Part shown: in pieces, positions 27,622-61,241 of the stretch
How the letters are laid out: each line of letters starts with the position of its first letter
Numbering within the stretch: the stretch's first letter is position 1
Sequence record: NC_049850.1
DNA length: 64,000 nt
Reading direction: 5' to 3' (one strand)
Made by a program: the position numbers and the translations under genes
Notes under the pieces: generated by a model
What the model saw: only the letters and a program-made list of their open reading frames with translations
Database searches by the model: none
Told to the model about the DNA's origin: nothing

Positions 27622-27683
27622 CGGCCAATGTTGAATTAACTGGATTGGCGTGTTGAGCGCCAGCGAAACTACTGGGAGGTGTT

Positions 27684-28499
27684 ATGTCGGATCAGGTGAA
27701 TGGTGAGTTGGGGGTTGGTGAGTTGGGTGATGAACGCAGTGAATCACTCAAGGGCGAGTTGGGGGCTGGTTGTGGTCTTTATGACTTTTTCGTCGCATTC
27801 AGCAACTGGCTGGAGCGCGGCGAGTCCCAGCAATCTCTCGAACACGGCCTCGGATTCTCGCGCTATTATGGCCTGTGTTCCAATCTCAACAAGTGGCTGC
27901 TTGATCGGGACCATCGACTTTTCGGGACCGACCAACACGGTCAACCGAGGGGCTGCTTATGGTACGCACGCGTCGACGAGTTTCAACGGGCACTCCAAGC
28001 GCTGTTTGCTGATCGCGGGCTGGATCGTGCGACACCGTTTGATGCTGACGAACTGGCGTACGAGCGCGCGGCGCAAGACCATACTCTATACGTCAATCAG
28101 GGACGCCTCTCGTTCATCCGCGAAGCATGTGCCGGACGCACGCTGACCACCAGCCAGATCGAGCGTGCTGTCGACGCGTTCTACATCGATATCGACAAGG
28201 CGGCTCCCCGGATCACGCGGCACACCAAGCGTGAGTTGTTCGAGCCCGTGTACGGCCTGTGCCAGAATTTCGTGTTCTGGCAGCGTGCGCAAGGCGTTGA
28301 GCGATCACGCGTGCGCACGTTCCTGAACCGGGAGCTTACTCGTGAGTTCACGGCCGCTGGTATGGATTCTCTGTACCCGTTCAACGCGGGCCGCGCAGAA
28401 AAGTACAACGCGGAAGAAAACACGTTCCTGAACCCGCGACGCCGCAAGTGGATTCGTGATCGCGCGGCCGTCGCCCTCGTACGTATGGGGGTCAAGTGA
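27684..28499 (+). CDS. Two-repeat protein (GLCxN...PFN...NxxR family)
   Basis: Two internal copies of GLC(S/Q)N...F...(T/Y)PF(D/N)...Y...NxxRxx(F/W)IR. Confidence 0.7.
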   Translation: MSDQVNGELGVGELGDERSESLKGELGAGCGLYDFFVAFSNWLERGESQQSLEHGLGFSRYYGLCSNLNKWLLDRDHRLFGTDQHGQPRGCLWYARVDEFQRALQALFADRGLDRATPFDADELAYERAAQDHTLYVNQGRLSFIREACAGRTLTTSQIERAVDAFYIDIDKAAPRITRHTKRELFEPVYGLCQNFVFWQRAQGVERSRVRTFLNRELTREFTAAGMDSLYPFNAGRAEKYNAEENTFLNPRRRKWIRDRAAVALVRMGVK

Positions 28500-33268: not shown

Positions 33269-34111
33269 ATGCAGACCAAACAGATCAACAAGCTGGAAGT
33301 CCTGAAGAACGTCATCAAATGCGACTCGAACGCCGAGGGCTGGGTCGATGTCTACAAGATGGCGGAAAAGCTGGAACTCTACAGCTTCCACGGGGGCCCG
33401 GACGACGCGCAAACCCGTCTCCGTGTGTATGCGGTCACCGAATGGCGTTGCACCGACACGCACGTGGGTCTCAGCGCCATCTACTTCGACGGCAAGCTCG
33501 TTGGCTGTATCGAACAGTGGTCGCGTAAGGGTGACGTGAACTACTCGTGGGTGAGTACCGAGGCCGCGATGGCGGTCCGCAACTTTCTGGCCGAGGGCAT
33601 GGAATTCCAGTTCCCGACCATCGGAGCCGACGACACTGTGGATTCGCGCTATCGCGTGAACTACCGTGATCAGATTCTGTGCGTCAACGGTTGGTACGCC
33701 GATAAACCGGTCACCTACGTCAAGGAGCCGCGCGCTCGGGCAGACGGGAAGTATCTGGCGTTCGACGCCGATTACGACTGCGTTATCCTGATCGCGCACG
33801 AGGACGGCACCACCGAACGGATTCCGGTGTCCGAGTTCTACATGGACCTGCACGTTCCGAAGCACGTGGTCGACGATCTGTTGACAGACGCCGAATAAGC
33901 GCGTACGATACGCCCATCTGATCACGGGAGGCCCATCATGAAGTACTTCTGGATTGCGGTTGTCGCGTTTCTAGTCTGCGACGCCTACCTGTACACCGAG
34001 AACGGTGAGTCGTATTTCTGGGGCAACCAACACCGTATCGAACGCCTTTTCAAACACGTGGCTCTCAGCCTCGGCACCTACCACGCTCAGGAGGATCAAG
34101 AAGATGAATAA
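33269..34111 (+). CDS. Hypothetical protein (33269-33898) and small TM protein (33938-34111, not in track)
   Basis: Second ORF begins MKYFWIAVVAFLVC...; GGAGG RBS. Confidence 0.65.
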
Positions 34112-35138
34112 ATACGCAGCGGAGTTCTTCGGCAAGTTTCACTACGCGGTCACGGTCGGCTACGACAGGGCCGATGGTGGCCCGTTCCAGTTCAACGATG
34201 GCATTTGCGAGAACTTCAGCGTGTACCTGCGTCGCGTTGGCGTCCCGGGCATCATCAAGGATGCGTATATGCGCGCCCTCAAGGACGCCTTCCAGTTCAA
34301 CGGACAGGACCGCGTGTTCCCGTTCAATCCGGGACGCATGGCCGAGTACAGTGAGGAAGTGCTCACGAACAAGGTCTACAAGAACGAGGAACGTCTTGCG
34401 TTCCTGCGCAACATGGTCAACGACTACGATCTGGTCGAACATCGCGTGGTTCCCAACCTGCTTGATCATTACTTCCGCGAACTGGACACGTGGCTGGACG
34501 TTAGCGCCGAAGGGCAGCGTCGGTTCCGAAACTACACCGGCATCTGCACGAACGTCGAGCACTGGCTCCAGTCCCATGGCGTGGACGATTTCGCACTCAC
34601 CTGTAACATGCGAAACCAGTTGACCCAAGAGTTCCAGATCGCGCTGAGCGCTCGTGACGAAGGTGTGTACGATGGCTACCCGTTCAACGCCAACGTCGGC
34701 CACTACCTGAAGGAAGCTCAGGCGTGCACGATCTACGACAACGCAGAGCGCGTAGCCTACATCCGTCGCCGGGCTGCACGTGCCTATCTGAACACGAGCA
34801 CCATCGACGCGTTCCTGACGGAATTCCGTCAGTGGTTCACGAACGGGCGCGCTGCCGACAACACGTTCTCGTCTGCGGCTGCTGTCTGTTCGAACCTGAC
34901 GCGGTGGATGCGGAGCACCGGAGCCGACGACTTCGCGTGCACGTGGGCACAGAAGAACCTCATGGAAAAATTCGTGCGCATGGGGCTTCACGCGCGATTC
35001 CCGTTCAACGAGCGCGCGATGGAATACGCAGACGAGCGTGACGCCGGAACGTTTTACAAAAACCCCAAGCGCTGTGCTTGGATCGAAAAGATGGGAATCA
35101 TTTCACATGCAGAACTCTGCAAGCAGTTCGGGGAATAA
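34104..35138 (+). CDS. Three-repeat protein (GICxN...PFN...NxxR family)
   Basis: Three copies: GICEN/GICTN/AVCSN ... FPFN/YPFN/FPFN ... YKNEER/YDNAER/YKNPKR. Confidence 0.8.
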   Translation: MNKYAAEFFGKFHYAVTVGYDRADGGPFQFNDGICENFSVYLRRVGVPGIIKDAYMRALKDAFQFNGQDRVFPFNPGRMAEYSEEVLTNKVYKNEERLAFLRNMVNDYDLVEHRVVPNLLDHYFRELDTWLDVSAEGQRRFRNYTGICTNVEHWLQSHGVDDFALTCNMRNQLTQEFQIALSARDEGVYDGYPFNANVGHYLKEAQACTIYDNAERVAYIRRRAARAYLNTSTIDAFLTEFRQWFTNGRAADNTFSSAAAVCSNLTRWMRSTGADDFACTWAQKNLMEKFVRMGLHARFPFNERAMEYADERDAGTFYKNPKRCAWIEKMGIISHAELCKQFGE

Positions 35139-35329: not shown

Positions 35330-35536
35330 ATGAACAACGTAGCGTCCCGCATTCTCGGCATCCTGAGCACCGAACTCGATCTCGAACCCGAGCACCTGAG
35401 CGTCGACCATTCGTTCCATTTTTCGGAATTCGAAACCGCATTGGACGACGAGTTCGATCTTCTGTCTGGTGCCGTCGTCTACGAATTCATGTCCGTGCGT
35501 GACATGGCATCGCGCATCGAGCGAGTTCTGGCGTGA
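35330..35536 (+). CDS. Acyl-carrier-protein-like protein lacking the DSL loop
   Basis: SRILGILSTELDLEPEHLSVDHSF / EFETALDDEFD / SVRDMASRI align to AcpP helices I, II and IV. Confidence 0.65.
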   Translation: MNNVASRILGILSTELDLEPEHLSVDHSFHFSEFETALDDEFDLLSGAVVYEFMSVRDMASRIERVLA

Positions 35537-35901
35537 CGCATTTCACCCTTCACCAACGCGAAATCGTTGAGCGTGTATTGTCCCGACTGGAACAGGCGGC
35601 AGAGGACCCGGTGGACGGTGCTCATCAGTACCTGTGCTTGCACATAGGCAGCATCGGGCGCATGCTCAGCCACTCCAAAACACGCTATTTCTTCCACAAC
35701 CTGTTCGGGCGCGACACCCCGTACACGAAGGCGGCGCAAGCCCTGATCGAGCAGATCGCACAAGCACTCGATGGCAAGCGCGGCAACACGCTTCAGGGCT
35801 GGGTCAGCGTGCGTACCGGCTACATTCCGAACGCCGATGTCATGAACGCGGCTCGTGATGCGTGGCTTCATCGCGCACTCGAAATCGGGTATTTCGGATG
35901 A
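35533..35901 (+). CDS. Array-family paralogue (outlier 1)
   Basis: QYLCLHI...QIAQALDG...TLQGWV...AARDAWLHRAL. Confidence 0.7.
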   Translation: MTHFTLHQREIVERVLSRLEQAAEDPVDGAHQYLCLHIGSIGRMLSHSKTRYFFHNLFGRDTPYTKAAQALIEQIAQALDGKRGNTLQGWVSVRTGYIPNADVMNAARDAWLHRALEIGYFG

Positions 35902-36302
35902 ATTCGTTGCTCAAAATGCTAAAGCGCGTATTTACGCGCGGTGCCGCTGTCAATGGGGTTGACACGCGGCTGAGTCCGAAACAGATGGAGATCATGGTGC
36001 TGGTATGCGCCGAGATCAATTATCGCAACCCCGAGCACCAGCAGTTTATCTGTAGCGCGGTAACGCGCGCTGCCGAAGACCTAGATGCCTGTACGTGGTT
36101 CGGGCTGTCTCGTAGCTACCGACGCGCCGCAATCGGCATCCAGTTCCTGATAGACAGGGCCCTCAACAGCGGTGCACTCGGTCGTTGGATTTTCTATGAC
36201 ATGGGCGCACGTGCTATCGACTCCAAGAACGTGACCGCCGCCGTCAACCAGTGTCGGGCCGGTTGGCTCGAAACCATAATCGCGCGAGGACGCATCGAAT
36301 GA
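35898..36302 (+). CDS. Array-family paralogue (outlier 2)
   Basis: QFICSAV...LIDRALNSGALGRWI...CRAGWLETII. Confidence 0.7.
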   Translation: MNSLLKMLKRVFTRGAAVNGVDTRLSPKQMEIMVLVCAEINYRNPEHQQFICSAVTRAAEDLDACTWFGLSRSYRRAAIGIQFLIDRALNSGALGRWIFYDMGARAIDSKNVTAAVNQCRAGWLETIIARGRIE

Positions 36303-52348: not shown

Positions 52349-52377
52349 ATTCTAGCGATAGCCGATCACGTGGTCAA
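52349..52377 (-). promoter_or_regulatory. sigma70-type promoter
   Basis: Minus strand TTGACC-N17-TAGAAT. Confidence 0.8.
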
Positions 52378-53081
52378 GAACTTCTTACGCTTGTAATCCC
52401 AGCCGAGCGCCGTGTAGAAGTTCCAGATGTTGCCGTGCGTGTTCTTCTCGATCTGGCGCAGAGGGTTGTTCTCGATTCCGTGTGTACTGTCGTAGAACTC
52501 AAGCTGGAACTTCCAATCGTCCTCGAACTGCATGTTCCAGAAACCACGGTCGAGTCGCTTCTTCGCGTAGAACGCGCTACCGGCTACCCTCTGCCAATGA
52601 TGGACCCATGCGCCAAGCGTCTGGTTCGAGCGTCGGTAATCCGGGTCGCCGTACCCCGGGATCAGCACTACGTGCACGTTGGTTAGGACACGCGTCGCGT
52701 ATTCCGGCTCGTGATACTCAACGAAGTGCACGCGTCTCATGCTCGAAATTCCAATGTTGTCCAGTTCCACCCGATACTGGTGAAAAAGTCGTAGATCGAC
52801 CGATGGCTCTTGCTCTCGACATGCCGCAACGGATTGTCCGGCACGTAGTCCCAGCCGTCTGCGTACGCGTTCCAGTCACCGATGTCCATGTAGGTCGTGA
52901 ACTTCCGGAATCCGGGCACCCGGTTCTTCATGTTCTGGCGCACGCGTTCCACCTGCGCGCGACGCCAGCCGCTGAGTGCGGTAGCCGCGTGGTAGCGTCC
53001 GACTTCCCCGAGCCCGGGGATGCCAATGTCGTGCAACACGTGCGGCTGCGTACGCCACTCAAGCACGTAGATTCGATCCAT
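52366..53081 (-). CDS. Tandem paralogue pair (52737-53081 and 52366-52740)
   Basis: Shared IPGxG and NPLRxxExxxHxxIxxFxTxxGW motifs. Confidence 0.75.
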
Positions 53082-53089
53082 GTCTCTCC

Positions 53090-56000
53090 TTACCAGTTTT
53101 CGATCATCCAGTACACCCACGCCATCCGCGTCTTTCTGAGCAGCGGGTCGGCGTCGGTGGTCCGGATACGGTGCTGCCACCACAGCCACTCGTCCAGTCC
53201 GGAACAGCGGTCGAGTAACCGGGCGACACGGACGATCAGATTGTCGACCGCGTTGTTGATTTCTCGATCCGTGAACTCTTGGCGTAGGCCACCGGACGCC
53301 CGGTAGATGGCGCTGCACACACGGTCAGCCTGCCTGTCTTCGAGCCACATGTAGGCACGGCACAGGATACGGCGTTGCAAGTCCGTGATGCCAAGCTTTT
53401 CCGCGAACTCGATCTTTTGCTGTTCACCCCGCATCACCAGTTCTCCAACATGAACTGAGTCCACGCGATCCGCGACTCCTGAACCCACTTGTGATTCTGC
53501 GAATAGGCTGGGTAGCCGCGCCGTGCCAGCCAGTCCGTGTATGAGATACAGCAGTCGATTTCGTTGTGGATGCGCCGCGACAAATCGCGCTCGGCCGCAA
53601 ACATGGCACGACGCTCGGACGCTTTCGGCATCCGTTCCGCAACGATGTCGTTGACTCCATGTCCGATAGCGCCGCAGATGTACGTGTTGTTCCCGGCGCG
53701 CAGATGCTGGAGAGCACGAACCAACAGTTCTCGATGTAACTCGTTCATAACCAGTTCTCCAGCATGAAATCCATCCACGCGATCCGCGACTCACGCAGTT
53801 TCGCCGTGTCCTGATCATCGATGTGAACCTGACCAGTGTGATACAGCCACGCCGAATAGCTGCCAACCGGACTCAGGGCCGCGTGGATACGCGCGGTCAG
53901 CCGGTCTGTGGCCTCAGTCAGATACCGGAACTGATCGCGGCGTTCGCGCTCCGTGATCATGCCCGTCCGCTGCATTTGGTGGACACTGCGCATACATTCC
54001 TCACGTGCCTCGAACAGTGCAAAGCAGATCATGGAGTTACGGCCGTCGACCATGCGATCACGTGCGACGCGTAGCACACAGCGTGCCGTATATCGGATTT
54101 TTGCGTTGTTGAATTCTTCGGTCATACCCAGTTCTCCAGCATGAAATCCATCCACGCGATGCGGGTGGCGCGACGGGCCTCTACGCTACTGTGGCCCGTC
54201 CCGTACGGAATGCCGTGCCGCATTTGCAGCCACGAGTCTAAGGAACTTGCGCCCCCAAGCTCCTGACGAATGCGAGTCGCCAGTTTCTTGTGTGCGAGCC
54301 CGATGTATTCGAGCGCCGCAGCCCCATCTTCCACCGTGATCGTGCCCGCGTTCACCTTCTGCTCGACGATAGTGCTGTGTTCCTCAGCCACGTTTGCGAG
54401 GGCAAAACAAATCATGCTGCTCTGCTTTCGCACGATGCGGAGCCGCGCGCACACCAAGAGCAAACGTGCGTAGTTCTTAACGGCGTGAGCCTCTACAATA
54501 TCGTCGACTTCTTGTGTTTCGCTCATACCCAGTTCTCCAGCATAAAGTTGATCCACGCTAAACGCGTGGCCCGCATCGGGTCCATGAGTTCTCGGGCCCG
54601 GAGTCCACGCGGCAGATGCCCATTATTCAGAACCCACGACGTGAGCGACGTGTACCCCTGCAATTCGAGCAGGATGCGGTTATGCAGCGCGTCACGGGCC
54701 GCGTTCATCACGTCGATCACGTGGTTGCACTCGGTGGCCGACAGGCATCCGCGCAACAACGCGCTCCGGGCCGCAGCTACATGGTTGTCCTTTACGACCG
54801 AGATCGCGGCACAAATGTACTGCGACCGGCCTTCCTCGAATCGTTCGCGCGCCCCTTGCAACAGTGTCCGCGCCGCTGACCGAATTTCGTCATGCGTGGG
54901 CGTCATGCGGCCTCCACCTGCTCGATCATCCACTGGACCCATACGATGCGGGTCTCGCGGATTCCCTTCAGGTCGTAGTACGGATCGTTGCTGTTACGCA
55001 GTTGCCGGGACGACCAGCCGTTGAGCGTAGTGTACGGGTAGATCAGGATATTGATCCACGCACCCAGATCACGCCGGGCACACACGAGATCGTTCAGCGT
55101 GTAGTTCTGGTTCGGGAGCAGGAGATTCAGGTACTTGTAGGCGCGATCCAGTGCGTTGCACAGGAACTCTTCATCCTTGTTGCGGATATAGCCCTTCGCC
55201 AATTGCAGCAGCCGGATTTTCAGCGCTTTGTGTTGCATGGTCACCTCCAAAAGAAAACGAGTTGCAAGAATACAGCGCGGGCCGTACCTTGTCAACTCGT
55301 TTTCATCACTTCCAGTTATCCAGCATCCACTGAATCCACGCGATCCGCGTTTCTTGTGTGAGCGCTGCCGGAAGGTAGCGCTGGTTGTAGCCGGTTTCCT
55401 TCTCGATGTACGATTCCAGTGTCCACCGGAAACCCATCTGATCGCGCTCGGCACCCATGGCCGCAGCCAGAATTCCATACACGTGCTCGCGCAGGTCCTC
55501 GGCGGTATCGACCATGTTGCGCTCACGCCCGATCTTGGAGATCAGGCAGCACACGAAGTCGTCACCACGCAGCAGCCGTCGCTGTGCCTCTTCCAGAATC
55601 TGGCGGTATTCAGCCTTCATGCGACTGCTCCGGATGCTTGAGGCGGCCACGTGGTTCCTCGTCGTTTTCCGCGCGCTCGACACCGACCGTGTAATTCGCA
55701 GTCGAGGCCGTTACGGTGGCCAGCACCGCAGTAAGTTCGACCGGCGTCAGCCCGTGCTTGGAGCCGAGGCCCTGCATGAACGTGTACAGTTCTGAGGTTG
55801 CGAGTGCGACACCCCAATGTCGCTCGTGAATCGGCATCAGTCCCATTATGCCCAGTTCTCCATCATGTAGGTGAGCCACTGGACACGCGTTTCCTTCATG
55901 TCGCGCTTGTCCAGACGTTGGTGACCCGTGCACAGGCGCACGAAGTCGTCGAGGACAACCGGCTGATCTTCCGGGGTCCGTGTGCAGTTACGCAGAATCT

Positions 56001-58012
56001 GCGTCACGTGCGTGCGCAGCACCTCAGCCGCGTCCGGCGCGTTCAGGTGGTTGCCAGCGATACGGATGGCCGTACACACGAGCATCACACTGTCCGTCTC
56101 GATCAGATCGCGCGCCTTTTCCAGAATGCGGTAGTAGGTGTCACGCATCTGCATCTTCCCCTTCCTGCTCTTGTTCCTCGGCCGCGATGCGCGGCAATTC
56201 GCGGGTGAAATCGATATCCTGCTCCACCATCCACCGGGCCCAAATGGCACGCGTCTGCTGGAGGTCTTCGAACACAAGTCCCGCTGCCTCGTACCCGTGG
56301 ACGCGGTGAAGCCATGCTTCGAGCGTGCCCCCATCACCCAGCACCTTACTGATGTACCACACAATCTCGCTGGCTTCTGCGCTGATGGTGGTGCCCTCGA
56401 TTTCCAGCGCGTTGAAGAACGAACCGGGGCCCTCGACCTCGGCGCGGGCACGCTGCTCGCGATTAATCTGGACAGCCGCCCCCTCGATTGCGTGGCACAG
56501 GAACGAGTGGACGTTACCGCAATGCGAATTCTGGCCCGGGCCATTTTCGAGCACCAGTTCTGCGGCACGCAGCAGAAGTTGCTTTTGGATTTCTTTCATC
56601 GTCATTCTCCCATCATGTGACGGAGCCACGCGAGGCGGCCAAGCTTAGCGCGTTCGTTGCACGTGCTGCCGCGCGGTACTCCCAAGGTGTACGCCACCCA
56701 GCTTTCGTAGGTATTGAAACCCTTGATCTGGGACTGAACGAACCGCACCAGTTCTGCACCGGCCTGAACGTACTCACGCTGCTCATCCGTAGTCAGTCGG
56801 GCCGCCGGATTGTCGATGAATCCGGCGCTGCGCCCCGTCAGAATGTTGGCGGCACCCTCGATTGCGTGGCACAGGAAGTGGTGCTGATCGTACTGCGCGG
56901 ACGCGATCACCAGTTGGTGGGCGAGCGCCAGAATCTCGTATTTCTTGCTCTTCATTGCCAGTTGTTCTCCATCATCCACGTGATCCACGCAAGGCGCGTT
57001 GCCCGCATCTTCACTTGTTGTTCGGGGCCCGCCATGCTGGCCAGCGTCAGTTCCGGATGCCCGTTTTCGCGCAGCCACACTTCGAGCGTGTGGGCGCGTG
57101 AGCCGTCCTTCAACTCCAGCAGGTTACCGATGTGGTAGTCGATATCCAACTCTGCGATATGATACGCTTCTTGCTCCTGCGCCGTCAAATCAGCCGTGAG
57201 TTGGGTGACTGCCCACTGAACGGCGCTGCACACGAATTCCTCGTTGCGCGCCTGAATCAGGTCCCATGCGGCCCGCAGGATTTCCCGGTGAATGTTCTTC
57301 TGCATCACCAGTTCTCCAGCATGTGCCGTACCCACGCGATGCGAACTTCACGCGTTCGCACGATGTGCTCGACTTTCGTCACCAGATCGTAAAGCGGAAT
57401 GCCCAGCTTCTTTTCCAGATAACTGTCGATGGTGCAGGAACCCGGGACCTCGCGGTCGAGAGCCGCGTTGATCGAGTTGTAGAGGGAGCGCGAGGCCACG
57501 CGCATTTCCTGCGAGCGCGCTGTCGGCCAACGCCACACGGCACGGTGGTCGACAGAATCGCCGCCCAGCGCGCTACCCGCGCTGGCCACATGGCCGCAGA
57601 TCAGGGTTCGCTGGTCGACCGGTGTTGCGATAAGCCTTTCGAGTACCACTTCGAGGATTTCACGTTCTTGCGATGTCAGCATCCATTAACTCCAGTTGTC
57701 GAGCATCCACGTGATCCACGCGATGCGGGTTTCTCTTAGTGCCTGCTCCTGCGCACGCTGCTCCGTGTACGACAGATTCCACGGATCGTTCCGGATATGG
57801 CCGTGCTTCACGAGCCACGTGTTGAGCGAATGGGAGCCCTCCAGCAGCGTCGCGATCCGGGCCTTGATGGATTCTGCGGCATGTTTAGCGACTGCCGTAC
57901 CATCGGCCTTCGCGTACCGGTCGACGGCGACGCAGATGTACGTGTACCGCTTGCACGCGATGTCGGCTCGCGCCCATAGCAGCAGGTCGATTTCCTTGCT
58001 AGTCAGCTTCAT
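53090..58012 (-). CDS. Tandem array of 13 paralogous 102-154 aa genes plus one unrelated 78-aa ORF (55610-55846)
   Basis: Members: 57686-58012, 57305-57682, 56952-57305, 56602-56955, 56141-56605, 55846-56154, 55306-55620, 54903-55238, 54523-54906, 54122-54526, 53745-54125, 53434-53748, 53090-53434. Shared (I/L/V)CxA, (T/S)LxxW and RxxRxAWxxxMxxxW. Confidence 0.9.
55267..55295 (-). promoter_or_regulatory. sigma70-type promoter inside the array, enclosed by an inverted repeat
   Basis: Minus strand TTGACA-N17-TATTCT; arms AAAACGAGTTGCAAG (55254-68) and CTTGTCAACTCGTTTT (55288-303). Confidence 0.8.
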
Positions 58013-58190: not shown

Positions 58191-59485
58191 TTACACGCCC
58201 GGCGACTGCCGCGCAACAGAAATATCATGCTTTTTGTACGCGGCCTCGCAAACCACGTCCGCGCTCAGCCAGTTGGCAGCGGCCACACGCTTCATCGCCT
58301 TCACCCACTCGCGACGGAACGCCACGGAATCGGCACCGAACGAGGCCAGCGCGTCGTGCTCGAATTGCATGGAACTGAGCATTTGACGGTGCGGCCGAAG
58401 TTGGGCCTGCCATTCGGAGAACGCAGGGTTCTGGCATTCGGTCAGGAGAATCGCGTCGATGTGATTGCCCTCCAGTGATCGATCGTACAGGTCGTCCGGG
58501 ATCGCGTGTCCAACCACGCACTTACAGCCGTTGTCGCCCCTGTACATGCAACCCCAGCCTCCGTCCATCTTCGTGATGGTGGAAGGGCGGCCCTGCTCCA
58601 GAATAGCGAGTGCGAGGTGGTCGAACAGGATTTGTCGTGCGTCTCGAATGTCGTCGTAGCTCATCAGAATTCCTCGTCGTCGTTGGGGGTGGGTTTCACA
58701 CGCGAGAAGAACATCAGTTCCTTCAGGCAGTCCATGCGTGTCGCGCACACCCGCGTCGCATGCAGAGGATCACCGTCGTCGCCATCGGGCCATAGCATAG
58801 CCACGAATTTGTTGTCGCCTTCAGTGCTGATCGTGATCGTTTTGTGGTTCACCGTAAACCACGCGATGATCTGTTCCGGTCCGTACTGGGGAATCTTGCC
58901 CTCTTTCTTCACCCGGTTTGCCAGTGCCTCGATGGCGCGAACGTACGTCGGGCCCATTGCTTCGAGGCCAATAACACCGTCCCAGCGTACGACCACCGCG
59001 TCCGGTGCCGAGGTCACGACACGGATACGCTGGCCCTGAGTATTCAGGAACTGGAGCAGCGTCGCGATGGACATGCTTTCGGTGAAACCCGTAGGCTCCT
59101 TGGCAACCTTCATGCCCTTGGCCTTGCGTTGCGACACGCCCTCGTCGGCACTCACGTACACGTTGACGACGCCGTTGCCGACGTAGGTCGCAGTATCACC
59201 GAAAACCTTTTGATCGTGGCTCGTGGCCTTGGTCCGGAGTTCGGGAATCGATTGGAAAGTGCAGTGTTCGAAAGCGCGGCGGCCGTCCGAGAACAGCGCG
59301 TGCACCCGCACCACGTGTGGGGTCAGGTATACCGTCTTGTACTTCTTGTTGCTGAACGTGTGATTCATCGTGGGCCAACGACGGCGCGCGTCCGCCAGAG
59401 CATCTGCTTCCGTTTCGTAGTTCAACGCCATATCGTTCAGCGTATCGTGGTTCATGATCTTCCATTGTTTGGGCAACGCCGCCAT
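58191..59485 (-). CDS. Two hypothetical proteins (58191-58664 with CMYRGDNGCKCVVG motif; 58664-59485)
   Basis: TGATG overlap; AAGGAGG RBS. Confidence 0.7.
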
Positions 59486-59883: not shown

Positions 59884-59920
59884 ACAAAAACAGGGGAACC
59901 ACATTGTATGGTTCCCCTGT
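59884..59920 (-). terminator. Intrinsic terminator
   Basis: Minus strand ACAGGGGAACCAT-ACA-ATGTGGTTCCCCTGT followed by TTTTGTTT. Confidence 0.85.
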
Positions 59921-59927
59921 CTGGGTG

Positions 59928-61241
59928 TCAATAATTTAGCCGTTCGTCTTCTTTGGCCCAGCCCGCGAGTACCGCGTCTGCCGCCTCGTCGCAATCTGCT
60001 CCGTGCAGTGCGCGCGTCACCGGGACCGCGCCTTCTTCCGACAGGTACAGGCACGCGAACACCGAACCGCTCTTGATCGGCAGCGGATGGCTGATGGCAT
60101 CGTAACGTGCGGCGGCCAGTGCATTGTTCTCGATCTCGGTGCGCAGGTCACGAAAGCGCTGCCGCAACGCGTCGTCTGCGCCCGTATCACGCTTGAGCAC
60201 GATTTCGATGTAGTTCAACAGTGCCACGTCTTGCTTGCTCAGCACGGTCATGTGTTCTCCTTCATGGGTTGTGGAAGTTCGTCGTAATACTGATGGGCAC
60301 ACAGCCAGTCGTAGATGAGAGGTGCCGCTTTGAGGTCGTCTGCGTAGAACAGTTCGAGCCATGACCCCTTGATGTAGAGGTTGCAGAACCGCTGTCCCAT
60401 GCGCAGGCCGTCGTTGAGCCGCTTGTGCTCACTCACAAACTGCATGTGTGCCGCGTTGATCACGATGATCTCCTATTTGATGACCAGATGGAAGAGGAAG
60501 TACAGGACACACGGAATCCCGATACCGACAATGATACCGGTGGCCGTCGCATTGTCCTCTGCATCATGGAACACGCCACGCACCTTCATGAACGTGAGCA
60601 TCAGGATCATGACGGCGCAGCACGCTGCTACCAAGAACAGAATGGTATCGTCTGCGCTCATGATCAGCCTCGCGCCCGGATGTAGGCCATAGCCTTGTCG
60701 AACGCCTCTTCGAACTCGCGCTCCGTACTCGCGTACTCGCCGCTGCCCCAGAAGTAGTCGAGGCCGCCCTCGTGCTCGATGCTCAGGCACGTGGGTTTGA
60801 CCGATACCGAATACTGTGCGTAGTCGCCCACGCCGTAGGTGAAACGCACCTCGACTGTGCGGTCTGCGTCGACGCGCTGGTAGATGCGATGGACAACGGC
60901 ACCGTCACCTTCGTCCTCGTCGTCGCGCCGGAAGATCGGGACCTCGATGTTGACGTGGGCCGTGCGTCGCTGGGTGTAGTGCAGAACGTGTTCCATCATT
61001 CCTCCTTGAACGTTACATCGTCTCCGCGATCATAGGCTTCCGCCAGATCAGCGGCCTGCTCGCGCATTTGCTGAGCCAGATTCGAATGATACGCGGATGA
61101 ACTCGGCATGTCAAATGCATCTGCCTCGACGGCCCACGAATCGTGCAGGTCAGCCAGCGCCCGCAGCGCCTGCGGTGACTGCGAGAGCATGCGCGACTCC
61201 TGCTCCCCGATCTTGAACGTTCGGAATACGCGATCAGCCAT
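59928..61241 (-). CDS. Five hypothetical proteins (59928-60251, 60248-60463, 60473-60661 TM, 60664-60999, 60996-61241)
   Basis: Coupled ORFs with RBSs. Confidence 0.65.

Follow-up and report, generated by a model that had tools for sequence, protein, structure and literature searches.

The leftward-transcribed right arm of BcepSaruman, a giant (jumbo) Burkholderia phage, carries a fixed, ancient tandem multigene family of 13 intact paralogues, interrupted by a single unrelated gene. Their products are predicted to share a helical fold with a conserved base and a variable tip, and the best explanation of the array is a repertoire of early-expressed, non-enzymatic helical binding proteins built on this plan, a reading that we hold tentatively and at somewhat less than an even chance.

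A fixed, ancient tandem array

The analyzed window, a stretch of 64,000 nucleotides, corresponds to bases 186001-250000 of the BcepSaruman genome (MK552140.1), and its positions 53090-58012 are identical (100%) to bases 239090-244012 of that record. The array comprises gp388-gp401 (Table 1), for which GenBank lists 14 minus-strand genes, every product being a 'hypothetical protein'. An earlier note, made from the letters of the sequence, had described 13 coupled minus-strand genes of 102-154 aa. The number, strand and coupling hold, whereas the annotated lengths are 100-154 aa; gp396, annotated at 100 aa, reaches 102 aa only with an upstream ATG as start. Adjacent genes overlap by 1-11 nt, with two exceptions: gp401 and gp400 are separated by 3 nt, and a 67-nt gap, the sole intergenic gap of such size, occupies 55239-55305. 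This gap contains a sigma-70-like promoter match on the coding strand, and gp395 matched neither the family profile nor Pfam or PHROG, in agreement with the proposed interruption of the array by one unrelated ORF and a putative internal promoter. The gp395 gene is kept in BcepSauron (97%).

Table 1. Members of the family and associated features in the window
Feature	Coordinates	Strand	Evidence
Distant member (outlier 1), 122 aa	35533..35901	+	profile E 5e-9; hhalign probability 94%
Distant member (outlier 2); start GTG 35862 or ATG 35895	35862..36302	+	profile E 3e-5; ORF list
gp388 (BcepSaruman_388), member, 114 aa	53090..53434	-	annotation; profile E 7e-28; alignment
gp389, member, 104 aa, modelled	53434..53748	-	annotation, profile, alignment; AlphaFold2
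gp390, member, 126 aa	53745..54125	-	annotation, profile, alignment
gp391, member, 134 aa, second model	54122..54526	-	annotation, profile, alignment; AlphaFold2
gp392, member, 127 aa	54523..54906	-	annotation, profile, alignment
gp393, member, 111 aa; first gene past the internal promoter match	54903..55238	-	annotation, profile, alignment
Putative sigma-70-like promoter match (TTGACA, 17 nt, TATTCT)	55267..55295	-	consensus match only
gp394, member, 104 aa	55306..55620	-	annotation, profile, alignment
gp395, unrelated ORF within the array, 78 aa	55610..55846	-	no family profile match
gp396, member, 100 aa	55846..56148	-	annotation, profile, alignment
gp397, member, 154 aa; acidic C-terminal tail (net charge -15)	56141..56605	-	annotation, profile, alignment
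gp398, member, 117 aa	56602..56955	-	annotation, profile, alignment
gp399, member, 117 aa	56952..57305	-	annotation, profile, alignment
gp400, member, 125 aa	57305..57682	-	annotation, profile, alignment
gp401, member, 108 aa; transcriptionally first array gene	57686..58012	-	annotation, profile, alignment

Profile search, clustering and alignment agree that the 13 genes form a real family of diverged paralogues with conserved ends and a variable middle, as had been claimed. When the profile of the 13 was searched against the 925 six-frame ORFs of the window, exactly these 13 were matched (E 5e-23 to 5e-35), and BLASTP single-linkage clustering at E<1e-4 placed all of them in one cluster. Pairwise identity among them averages 25.6% (range 15-37%), the invariant columns of their alignment are L, C, R, W and M, and the predicted pI varies from 4.6 to 9.2, so that their surfaces differ. 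The two outliers reported outside the array are genuine profile matches, whereas the accompanying count of 15 copies is too low: gp441 and gp445, two more distant members located beyond the window near the right genome end, bring the genome total to 17, with 13 copies in the array and 4 dispersed. Two further candidate relatives, gp403 (58191-58664) and a three-repeat protein at 34005-35138, were rejected, with hhalign probabilities of 0.3% and 1.4%, respectively.

The array had originally been labeled a gene accordion. Gene accordions, such as those of the poxvirus K3L type, consist of recent, near-identical copies, the number of which varies between close isolates. The BcepSaruman genes are likewise in tandem, but they display only about 26% identity and are equal in number in both Sarumanvirus genomes, BcepSaruman and BcepSauron, the only two of the genus. 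All 13 genes are present and intact in BcepSauron, in unchanged order and with 95.9% nucleotide identity over the region. Neighboring copies are slightly more alike than non-neighbors (mean identity 28.6% versus 25.0%; order-permutation p = 0.002), and a 56-nt repeat found at nine gene junctions could support unequal crossing-over, both of which would suit a recent, reversible tandem amplification under present dosage selection. However, identity among the junction repeats is limited to 61-84%, conservation of the last helix together with the ribosome-binding site accounts for them, and the paralogues, at 15-37% identity, are as distant from one another as from homologues of unrelated phages. 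The accordion reading is thus already refuted for the present array and retains next to no probability. The closer sub-pairs noted among adjacent genes stand in part: gp390 and gp391 are reciprocal best matches (37% identity), whereas gp397 and gp398 have the motif FLCHAIEGAA in common and an overall identity of just 26%. The nearest paralogue of gp394 is gp396 (32-34%).

Comparison of the two Sarumanvirus genomes yielded a dN/dS of 0.26 for the 13 genes, versus 0.21 for neighboring genes; the variable parts of the proteins gave 0.31 and the base 0.18. The gp392 and gp398 proteins are 86% and 73.5% identical to their BcepSauron orthologues, with dS values of 0.39 and 0.60, respectively. Selection is purifying throughout, variable parts included. 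Because dN/dS is below 1 even in these parts, the comparison of the two genomes gives no indication of an arms race, and the loops may vary from weaker constraint alone. Neutral or selfish expansion, whereby the copies would persist with none being individually functional, could be invoked given that jumbo phages tolerate many small genes and that the family has no known function. However, all 13 reading frames remain intact across two genomes with differences at about 4% of their bases in this region, the dN/dS values, overall and particularly in the base, indicate constraint, and an independent array shares the same pattern of conservation (see below), which renders this alternative very improbable.

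Extent of the family and copy number in other phages

Judging from sequence profiles, the array belongs to a large, widespread and uncharacterized phage family, which includes phrog_8421 (function not assigned) and about 1400 sequence clusters. At a threshold of E<=0.01, 12 array proteins out of 13 matched the phrog_8421 profile (best E 2.7e-10); its members are small phage proteins like those of the array, and the Sarumanvirus proteins match it weakly, with no match at E<=1e-3 for the two outliers or for gp441 and gp445. Exhaustive profile search retrieved 1411 cluster representatives at E<=1e-3. A word-index homologue search with the 13 sequences returned nothing beyond BcepSaruman's own proteins, and tblastn against an annotated phage collection matched Sarumanvirus and BcepIL02 gp33 (hypothetical) alone.

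The claim that the genes display no catalytic motif and belong to no described family is consistent with searches of Pfam, NCBIfam, PADLOC, PDB and Foldseek. No protein among the 13 of the array or among 92 members of the family scored above the curated cut-offs of Pfam-A and NCBIfam, the scattered matches being due to chance; no array member (0/13) matched the PADLOC defence-system profiles, and the family has no match in a PDB sequence search. Likeness to Acb2/Tad1-type sponges, Ocr-type mimics and anti-CRISPRs was found neither at the sequence nor at the fold level (PDB and Foldseek, two models), and no member matches the Pfam Acb2_Tad1_hairpin family. A profile search with a long first sequence revealed no fusions of the family domain to known domains, C-terminal extensions in four homologues had no Pfam match, and a literature search for the family and phrog_8421 found no description. 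The labels 'histidine kinase' and 'helix-turn-helix Cro subunit' attached to three members in BcepSauron are unsupported by profile and fold searches. DUF6197 (PF19698), a candidate on account of a Cys-containing motif, was matched by no family member in Pfam; a DUF6197 gene lies 3.4 kb downstream of a family member in one contig but is a separate gene.

Copy number varies between phages, as the earlier note had proposed to check. The relative phiRSL1 has no copies and 33 other phage loci have 1-2 copies each, in contrast to the 17 copies of BcepSaruman and the 12 copies arranged in tandem in L015, an unrelated 33-kb metagenomic contig; the survey left aside BCSR5 and Motura, which are more distant relatives by terminase. 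Independent expansions of the family have occurred in two or more unrelated phages. A more modest cluster is found in a 236-kb phage-like contig, where 4 domains are distributed over 3 adjacent genes, a two-domain fusion encoding one 243-aa protein being flanked by a further two members. Neighbor clustering across the 33 loci identified no conserved partner gene, an analysis that is confounded by spurious high-GC ORFs and by the synteny of related phages. In one 257-kb contig, the family gene is located two genes upstream of NAD-salvage genes.

Predicted fold and distribution of variation

AlphaFold2 modeled gp389 as a bundle of six helices with high confidence (pLDDT 96.0, pTM 0.86). In the gp391 model (pLDDT 95.1), helices 1, 2 and 3 are longer than in gp389, with helix 1 extended at its N-terminal end and the helix 2-3 hairpin extended as well. 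Foldseek searches of the PDB with both models retrieved nothing significant (best E 2.2 and 0.36, TM <= 0.42). The members are small, soluble proteins predicted to be all-helical, with a fold that has no solved relative.

The conserved base consists of the C-terminal half of helix 1, the N-terminal half of helix 2, the C-terminal half of helix 3, helix 4 and the very hydrophobic C-terminal helix, whereas the variable tip is formed by the N-terminal end of helix 1 and the helix 2-3 hairpin; another variable loop precedes the last helix. Pairwise identity among the 13 paralogues is 0.51 in the last helix and 0.24-0.27 in the base but drops to 0.13 at the tip of the hairpin and to 0.14 in the loop. 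Amino acid differences from BcepSauron are distributed similarly, amounting to 11.3% in the tip, 8.8% in the loop and 1-4% in the base, and the 12-copy L015 array displays the same pattern of base and tip conservation. As to whether the variable segments share one face, a check suggested earlier, the models place them at one pole plus one loop, the pole being assigned from helix topology rather than from measured distances. Predicted structure and variation together support the reading of a scaffold with a variable tip.

Four columns stand out: Cys25, Arg93 and Trp96 (gp389 numbering) are present in all of 92 diverse members and Arg13 in 68%, and the 12 members of L015, the most divergent independent array, retain every one of the four. 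The near-invariant Cys, two Arg and Trp hint at a possible shared site, which a pure scaffold would not require. These residues could form a pocket or reactive site, in which case the proteins would be small enzymes, redox-active proteins or sponges, for example for a nucleotide signal, and the variable tip would merely tune specificity or regulation. The invariant Cys is placed at the N-terminal end of helix 2, and a Cys at a helix N-terminus beside an Arg is a common reactive-thiolate arrangement. The sufficiency of one copy in most phages and the NAD-salvage genes in the 257-kb contig point in the same direction; indeed, the predominance of single copies is easier to reconcile with one common function than with a repertoire. 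However, no enzyme, sponge or cofactor-binding family or fold was matched. Furthermore, the conserved columns are spaced like a core-facing helix face and about three quarters of the circumference of the last helix is hydrophobic, so that the Cys and Trp may be mere packing residues. A shared site would also leave the 12-17 copies, their differing tips and the purifying selection unexplained. On balance, we regard it as unlikely.

Probable early expression, possible function and comparison with known multigene families

The context of the array is of the early type, in line with the expression timing proposed for it. Sigma-70-like promoter matches occur on the coding strand of this arm, whereas the structural module is without any; in a P22-like Burkholderia prophage, the family gene lies within the early-left operon; and in the related phage Matilda, genes of the terminal segment peak earliest (10.64898/2026.10.21.760668). 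For BcepSaruman itself, we infer the timing from these observations. At five junctions of the array, the final codons of the upstream gene contain a GGAG, positioned 8 nt ahead of the following ATG.

In the repertoire of binding proteins that we favor, the host polymerase would use sigma-70-type promoters to transcribe the array genes early, and these would be translated as coupled units, the last codons of one gene doubling at several junctions as the ribosome-binding site for the gene that follows. The encoded proteins would be non-enzymatic binders, in which the conserved base would supply the fold and perhaps also a docking site common to all, and the variable tip would give each paralogue its own host partner, be it a defence effector or a take-over target. 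One or two copies would suffice in most phages, and old local duplications would have generated repertoires of 12-17 in a few large ones. We likewise infer, rather than observe, an anti-defence role of the array.

Tight translational coupling, which favors equal co-expression, could also serve a single assembly, in which the paralogues would bind each other through the hydrophobic last helix and form hetero-oligomers with one structural or regulatory role. The conserved, mostly hydrophobic surface of that helix and the natural 243-aa fusion in the 236-kb contig, encoded beside two more members, are compatible with such an arrangement. Conversely, single chains are confidently predicted as compact monomers (pTM 0.86), and most phages have a single copy, so that an oligomer, if any, would usually be a homo-oligomer. 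We consider a common assembly quite improbable.

Function is known for only a minority of jumbo phage genes, and host-interaction genes are believed to reside in the genome 'arms'. Large eukaryotic viruses encode diverged multigene families, including the Bcl-2-like and ankyrin/PRANC proteins of poxviruses and the MGF proteins of African swine fever virus. Like the array, these families consist of many old paralogues of one small fold with each copy maintained, combine a conserved core with variable surfaces, and reside near the ends of large linear genomes, in regions that are expressed early and lie outside the core. The analogy is one of working principle: there is no sequence or fold relation, Foldseek rows with Bcl-2-family complexes being non-significant (E about 1, TM 0.3-0.4), and the partners of the poxvirus proteins are known. 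The broader proposition that the family is a repertoire scaffold of new helical fold, multiplied independently by large phages (to 12 and 17 copies) to neutralize or hijack many host proteins early in infection and thus a bacterial-virus counterpart of the poxvirus families of immune evasion, is doubtful at present.

The poly-immunity loci of bacterial polymorphic toxin systems are also arrays of tandem small divergent, often helical proteins, each neutralizing a different partner. The tandem divergence is alike, whereas the BcepSaruman array is phage-borne, has small hypothetical genes as neighbors with no adjacent toxin gene, and matches no Pfam immunity family.

The analysis adds a large unannotated family of about 1400 clusters with a confidently predicted fold for which no relative has been solved, a base and tip architecture, and the formation of long tandem arrays by repeated, independent growth. 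Should the members recognize different host proteins, the arrays would constitute a ready-made catalogue of probes for host defence or physiology in Burkholderia and related bacteria, as well as a bacterial-virus example of the multigene-family strategy of large eukaryotic viruses. Should the invariant Cys, Arg and Trp residues make up a site instead, the family would represent a new small enzyme or ligand binder carried by many phages. Under either reading, structural and expression studies would find in it a clearly defined target. A comparable case is Bacillus phage G, which carries about 35 copies of a zinc ribbon, the function of which is not known (PMC7824862). Both are expansions of small domains in jumbo phages, but the fold and family differ, and the family described here has expanded in at least two unrelated phages while being absent from phiRSL1.

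Composition and annotation of the array

The array is 100% identical to bases 239090-244012 of Burkholderia phage BcepSaruman (MK552140.1), a myovirus of the genus Sarumanvirus with a linear genome of 263.7 kb, and 95.9% identical to BcepSauron. It lies inside a ~29-kb block of small minus-strand genes that reaches the right genome end. For the array itself, GenBank lists 14 minus-strand genes (gp388-gp401), every one as 'hypothetical protein'. Thirteen of the 14 could be aligned over their whole length and formed a single cluster by BLASTP alone, with a mean pairwise identity of 25.6% (range 15-37%) and invariant L, C, R, W and M columns; gp395 was rejected as unrelated. When a profile built from these paralogues was run on the window translated in six frames (925 ORFs), it recovered exactly those 13 genes (E 5e-23 to 5e-35) and, more weakly, two plus-strand members. 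Thus, with small corrections, the 13 tandem diverged paralogues described in the earlier note were confirmed. Its two outliers were found as well. A piecewise scan of the remaining genome added gp441 and gp445, two further distant members near the right genome end, and an iterated profile converged on 17 members for BcepSaruman.

Coordinates of the array and associated features (window positions equal record positions minus 186000; the last three rows refer to other contigs)
Feature	Position	Strand	Remark
Array, gp388-gp401	53090-58012	-	
gp395	55610-55846	-	
Weaker member	35533-35901	+	hhalign probability 94%
Weaker member	35862-36302	+	
56-nt DNA repeat	53082-57736		at nine gene junctions
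Possible terminator-promoter junction	59888-59931	-	TTGACA-17-TACAAT
High-dS segment	54523-54906		
High-dS segment	56602-56955		
High-dS segment	58664-59485		
High-dS segment	60664-60996		
gp386 and gp387	52366-53081	-	directly downstream of array
gp403	58191-58664	-	just upstream of array
Separate paralogue pair, first gene	27657-28496	+	
Separate paralogue pair, second gene	33975-35135	+	
377-aa ORF	34005-35138		
12-copy array	L015:10001-18029		JGI 3300064013, Ga0598427_000095; contig GC 53%
Three adjacent family genes	L003:9634-11242 (236-kb contig)		ENA KERN20 scaffold
Lone member	L005:10001-13381 (257-kb contig)		ENA KERN20 scaffold

Neither the array members nor any of 92 diverse relatives reached the cut-off of a Pfam or NCBIfam model, and PADLOC and PDB sequence searches matched nothing. 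The earlier impression that no described family is represented therefore stands for these resources, but 12 of the 13 match phrog_8421 (function unknown). Exhaustive searching of 1.84 billion cluster representatives with a profile brought up 1411 proteins at E<=1e-3, of which 117 reach E<=1e-10, and their length is almost always ~100 aa; homologues bearing source names are called 'hypothetical protein'. Three family members in BcepSauron (MK552141.1; genes 391, 398 and 400) are labelled 'histidine kinase' or 'helix-turn-helix Cro subunit', names for which profile and fold searches gave no support. Nor did the profile searches link the family to DUF6197.

Predicted fold, variable regions and possible function

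The AlphaFold2 model of gp389, computed from the 92-sequence alignment (mean pLDDT 96.0, pTM 0.86), consists of six helices (3-18, 24-39, 43-63, 70-76, 80-84 and 86-103), and that of gp391 (pLDDT 95.1) has helices at 3-32, 39-59, 65-90, 96-104 and 112-132. gp391 owes its extra length to extensions of the helix 1 N-end and of the hairpin between helices 2 and 3, which, judging from the up-down topology rather than from coordinates, are predicted to share one pole. By helix topology, the variable parts fall at one pole and in one loop, in support of the scaffold-plus-variable-surface reading in the earlier note. Against the PDB, Foldseek found no significant match to either model (best E 2.2 and 0.36, TM <= 0.42); in a viral model library, the sole matches were uncharacterised phage proteins (BcepSauron paralogues, BcepF1, RiverRider and PhiW-14).

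Identity among the 13 is 0.51 in the last helix (14 residues; 1.1% amino acid differences from BcepSauron), 0.24-0.27 in the base segments (25-36 residues; 2.5-4.0%), 0.14 in the loop before the last helix (12-23 residues; 8.8%) and 0.13 in the hairpin tip (6-31 residues; 11.3%). The picture of fixed ends and a variable middle is supported, and the N-end of helix 1 varies at the same pole as the hairpin. Isoelectric points of array members range from 4.6 to 9.2. Between BcepSaruman and BcepSauron, dN/dS is 0.26 for the family and 0.21 for 20 neighbouring genes; within the family, the variable parts give 0.31 and the base 0.18. Purifying selection acts on all regions, variable parts included, and a neutral expansion of the family is unlikely.

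The results speak for a conserved helical scaffold that has a single variable pole; selection maintains every copy, and the genome arm that carries them is early-type and non-core. The leading, albeit tentative, working principle is a repertoire of binding proteins that differ in their host partners; the context suggests that these partners may be defence proteins. Across the 92 sequences (gp389 numbering), L9, C25, R93 and W96 are conserved in 100%, W73 in 96%, A12 and M100 in 95%, A27 in 92%, L64 in 87%, L56 in 84%, R90 in 78%, W99 in 77% and R13 in 68%, and most of these columns are spaced as core-facing helix stripes. The main rival to the binding repertoire, a function exerted at a shared site on the invariant Cys/Arg/Arg/Trp columns, appears rather unlikely. 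Ranked next, and more doubtful still, is mutual assembly of the proteins through the last helix, which is hydrophobic at 7 of 8 consecutive positions.

Copy number, age and divergence

Homologues occur in phage-like contexts, including contigs of 236 and 257 kb and of 45-110 kb, a P22-like prophage of Burkholderia gladioli (early-left operon, with repressor and recombination genes on either side) and Lessievirus BcepIL02 (gp33). Copy number varies widely. phiRSL1 (terminase 59% identical), which is the closest relative among sequenced phages outside the genus, has 0 detectable copies; in IMG/VR and GTDB genomes, there is 1 copy at 24 and 2 at 9 of the 33 loci; and an 8-kb stretch of L015, a 32.9-kb JGI contig, holds 12, against the 17 of BcepSaruman. 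The 236-kb contig carries four domains in three adjacent genes, the middle one a natural two-domain fusion (P0152, 243 aa). The tandem array of the unrelated L015 contig, composed mostly of a divergent subfamily whose members are mutually best hits, is an independent expansion; its conserved and variable regions are those seen in BcepSaruman, and R13, C25, R93 and W96 are kept in 12/12 members. Radical-SAM and YqeY-domain genes precede it. Two genes downstream of the lone member on the 257-kb contig come a phosphoribosyltransferase gene and a NAMPT-like gene; this proximity to NAD salvage genes may be a coincidence.

Between close relatives, copy number does not vary: BcepSauron, the only other genome of the genus, carries these 13 genes too, in unchanged order. 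Furthermore, most paralogues resemble metagenomic homologues as closely as they resemble one another. The array is thus fixed and ancient rather than the gene accordion proposed earlier, and a recent accordion is unlikely. Identity between adjacent copies slightly exceeds that between non-adjacent ones (28.6 vs 25.0%; permutation p = 0.002), and therefore old local duplication contributed. Mutual best hits are limited to gp390/391/392 and gp394/396.

For gp392 and gp398, dS between the two phages (0.39 and 0.60) is far above that of neighbouring genes, and it is also raised in some non-family genes of the arm. This patchy divergence suggests replacement of single genes through recombination with more distant relatives. 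These two are among four genes (high-dS segments in the table) with dS of 0.31-0.60, most neighbours being <0.1.

Expression signals, gene junctions and neighbouring genes

Array genes overlap by 1-11 nt, with two exceptions: gp401 and gp400 stand 3 nt apart, and elsewhere there is a single gap of 67 nt, whose coding strand contains a TTGACA-17-TATTCT match. In the small-gene arms, the coding strand is enriched in sigma-70-like matches: on the minus strand, record positions 1-40 kb have 22 and positions 240-260 kb have 10, and the structural module has 0 in 140-160 kb and 1 in 160-180 kb; a local scan gave 6 observed vs 2.7 expected. In the related phage Matilda, terminal-segment genes are at peak by the first time point. 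By analogy, and given the promoter matches, early expression of the array is likely. Further upstream, a strong 16-pair hairpin with a T run behind it overlaps a near-consensus promoter match (TTGACA-17-TACAAT), and the two may represent a terminator-promoter junction between arm transcription units.

GGAG within the last codons of the upstream paralogue precedes the following ATG by 8 nt at five junctions and by 11 nt at another two. This GGAG apparently doubles as coding sequence and ribosome-binding site for the next gene, which accounts for the 56-nt repeat at nine junctions and, within this array, for part of the 'fixed' C-terminal end.

The 377-aa ORF, with three apparent internal repeats judged by eye, is unrelated to the array family by hhalign, and no relation to that family was found for gp403, which has a Cys-rich motif and matches phrog_17693 (function unknown). 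A separate plus-strand paralogue pair was detected by BLASTP, and gp386 and gp387 form a tandem pair, both matching phrog_9342 (function unknown).
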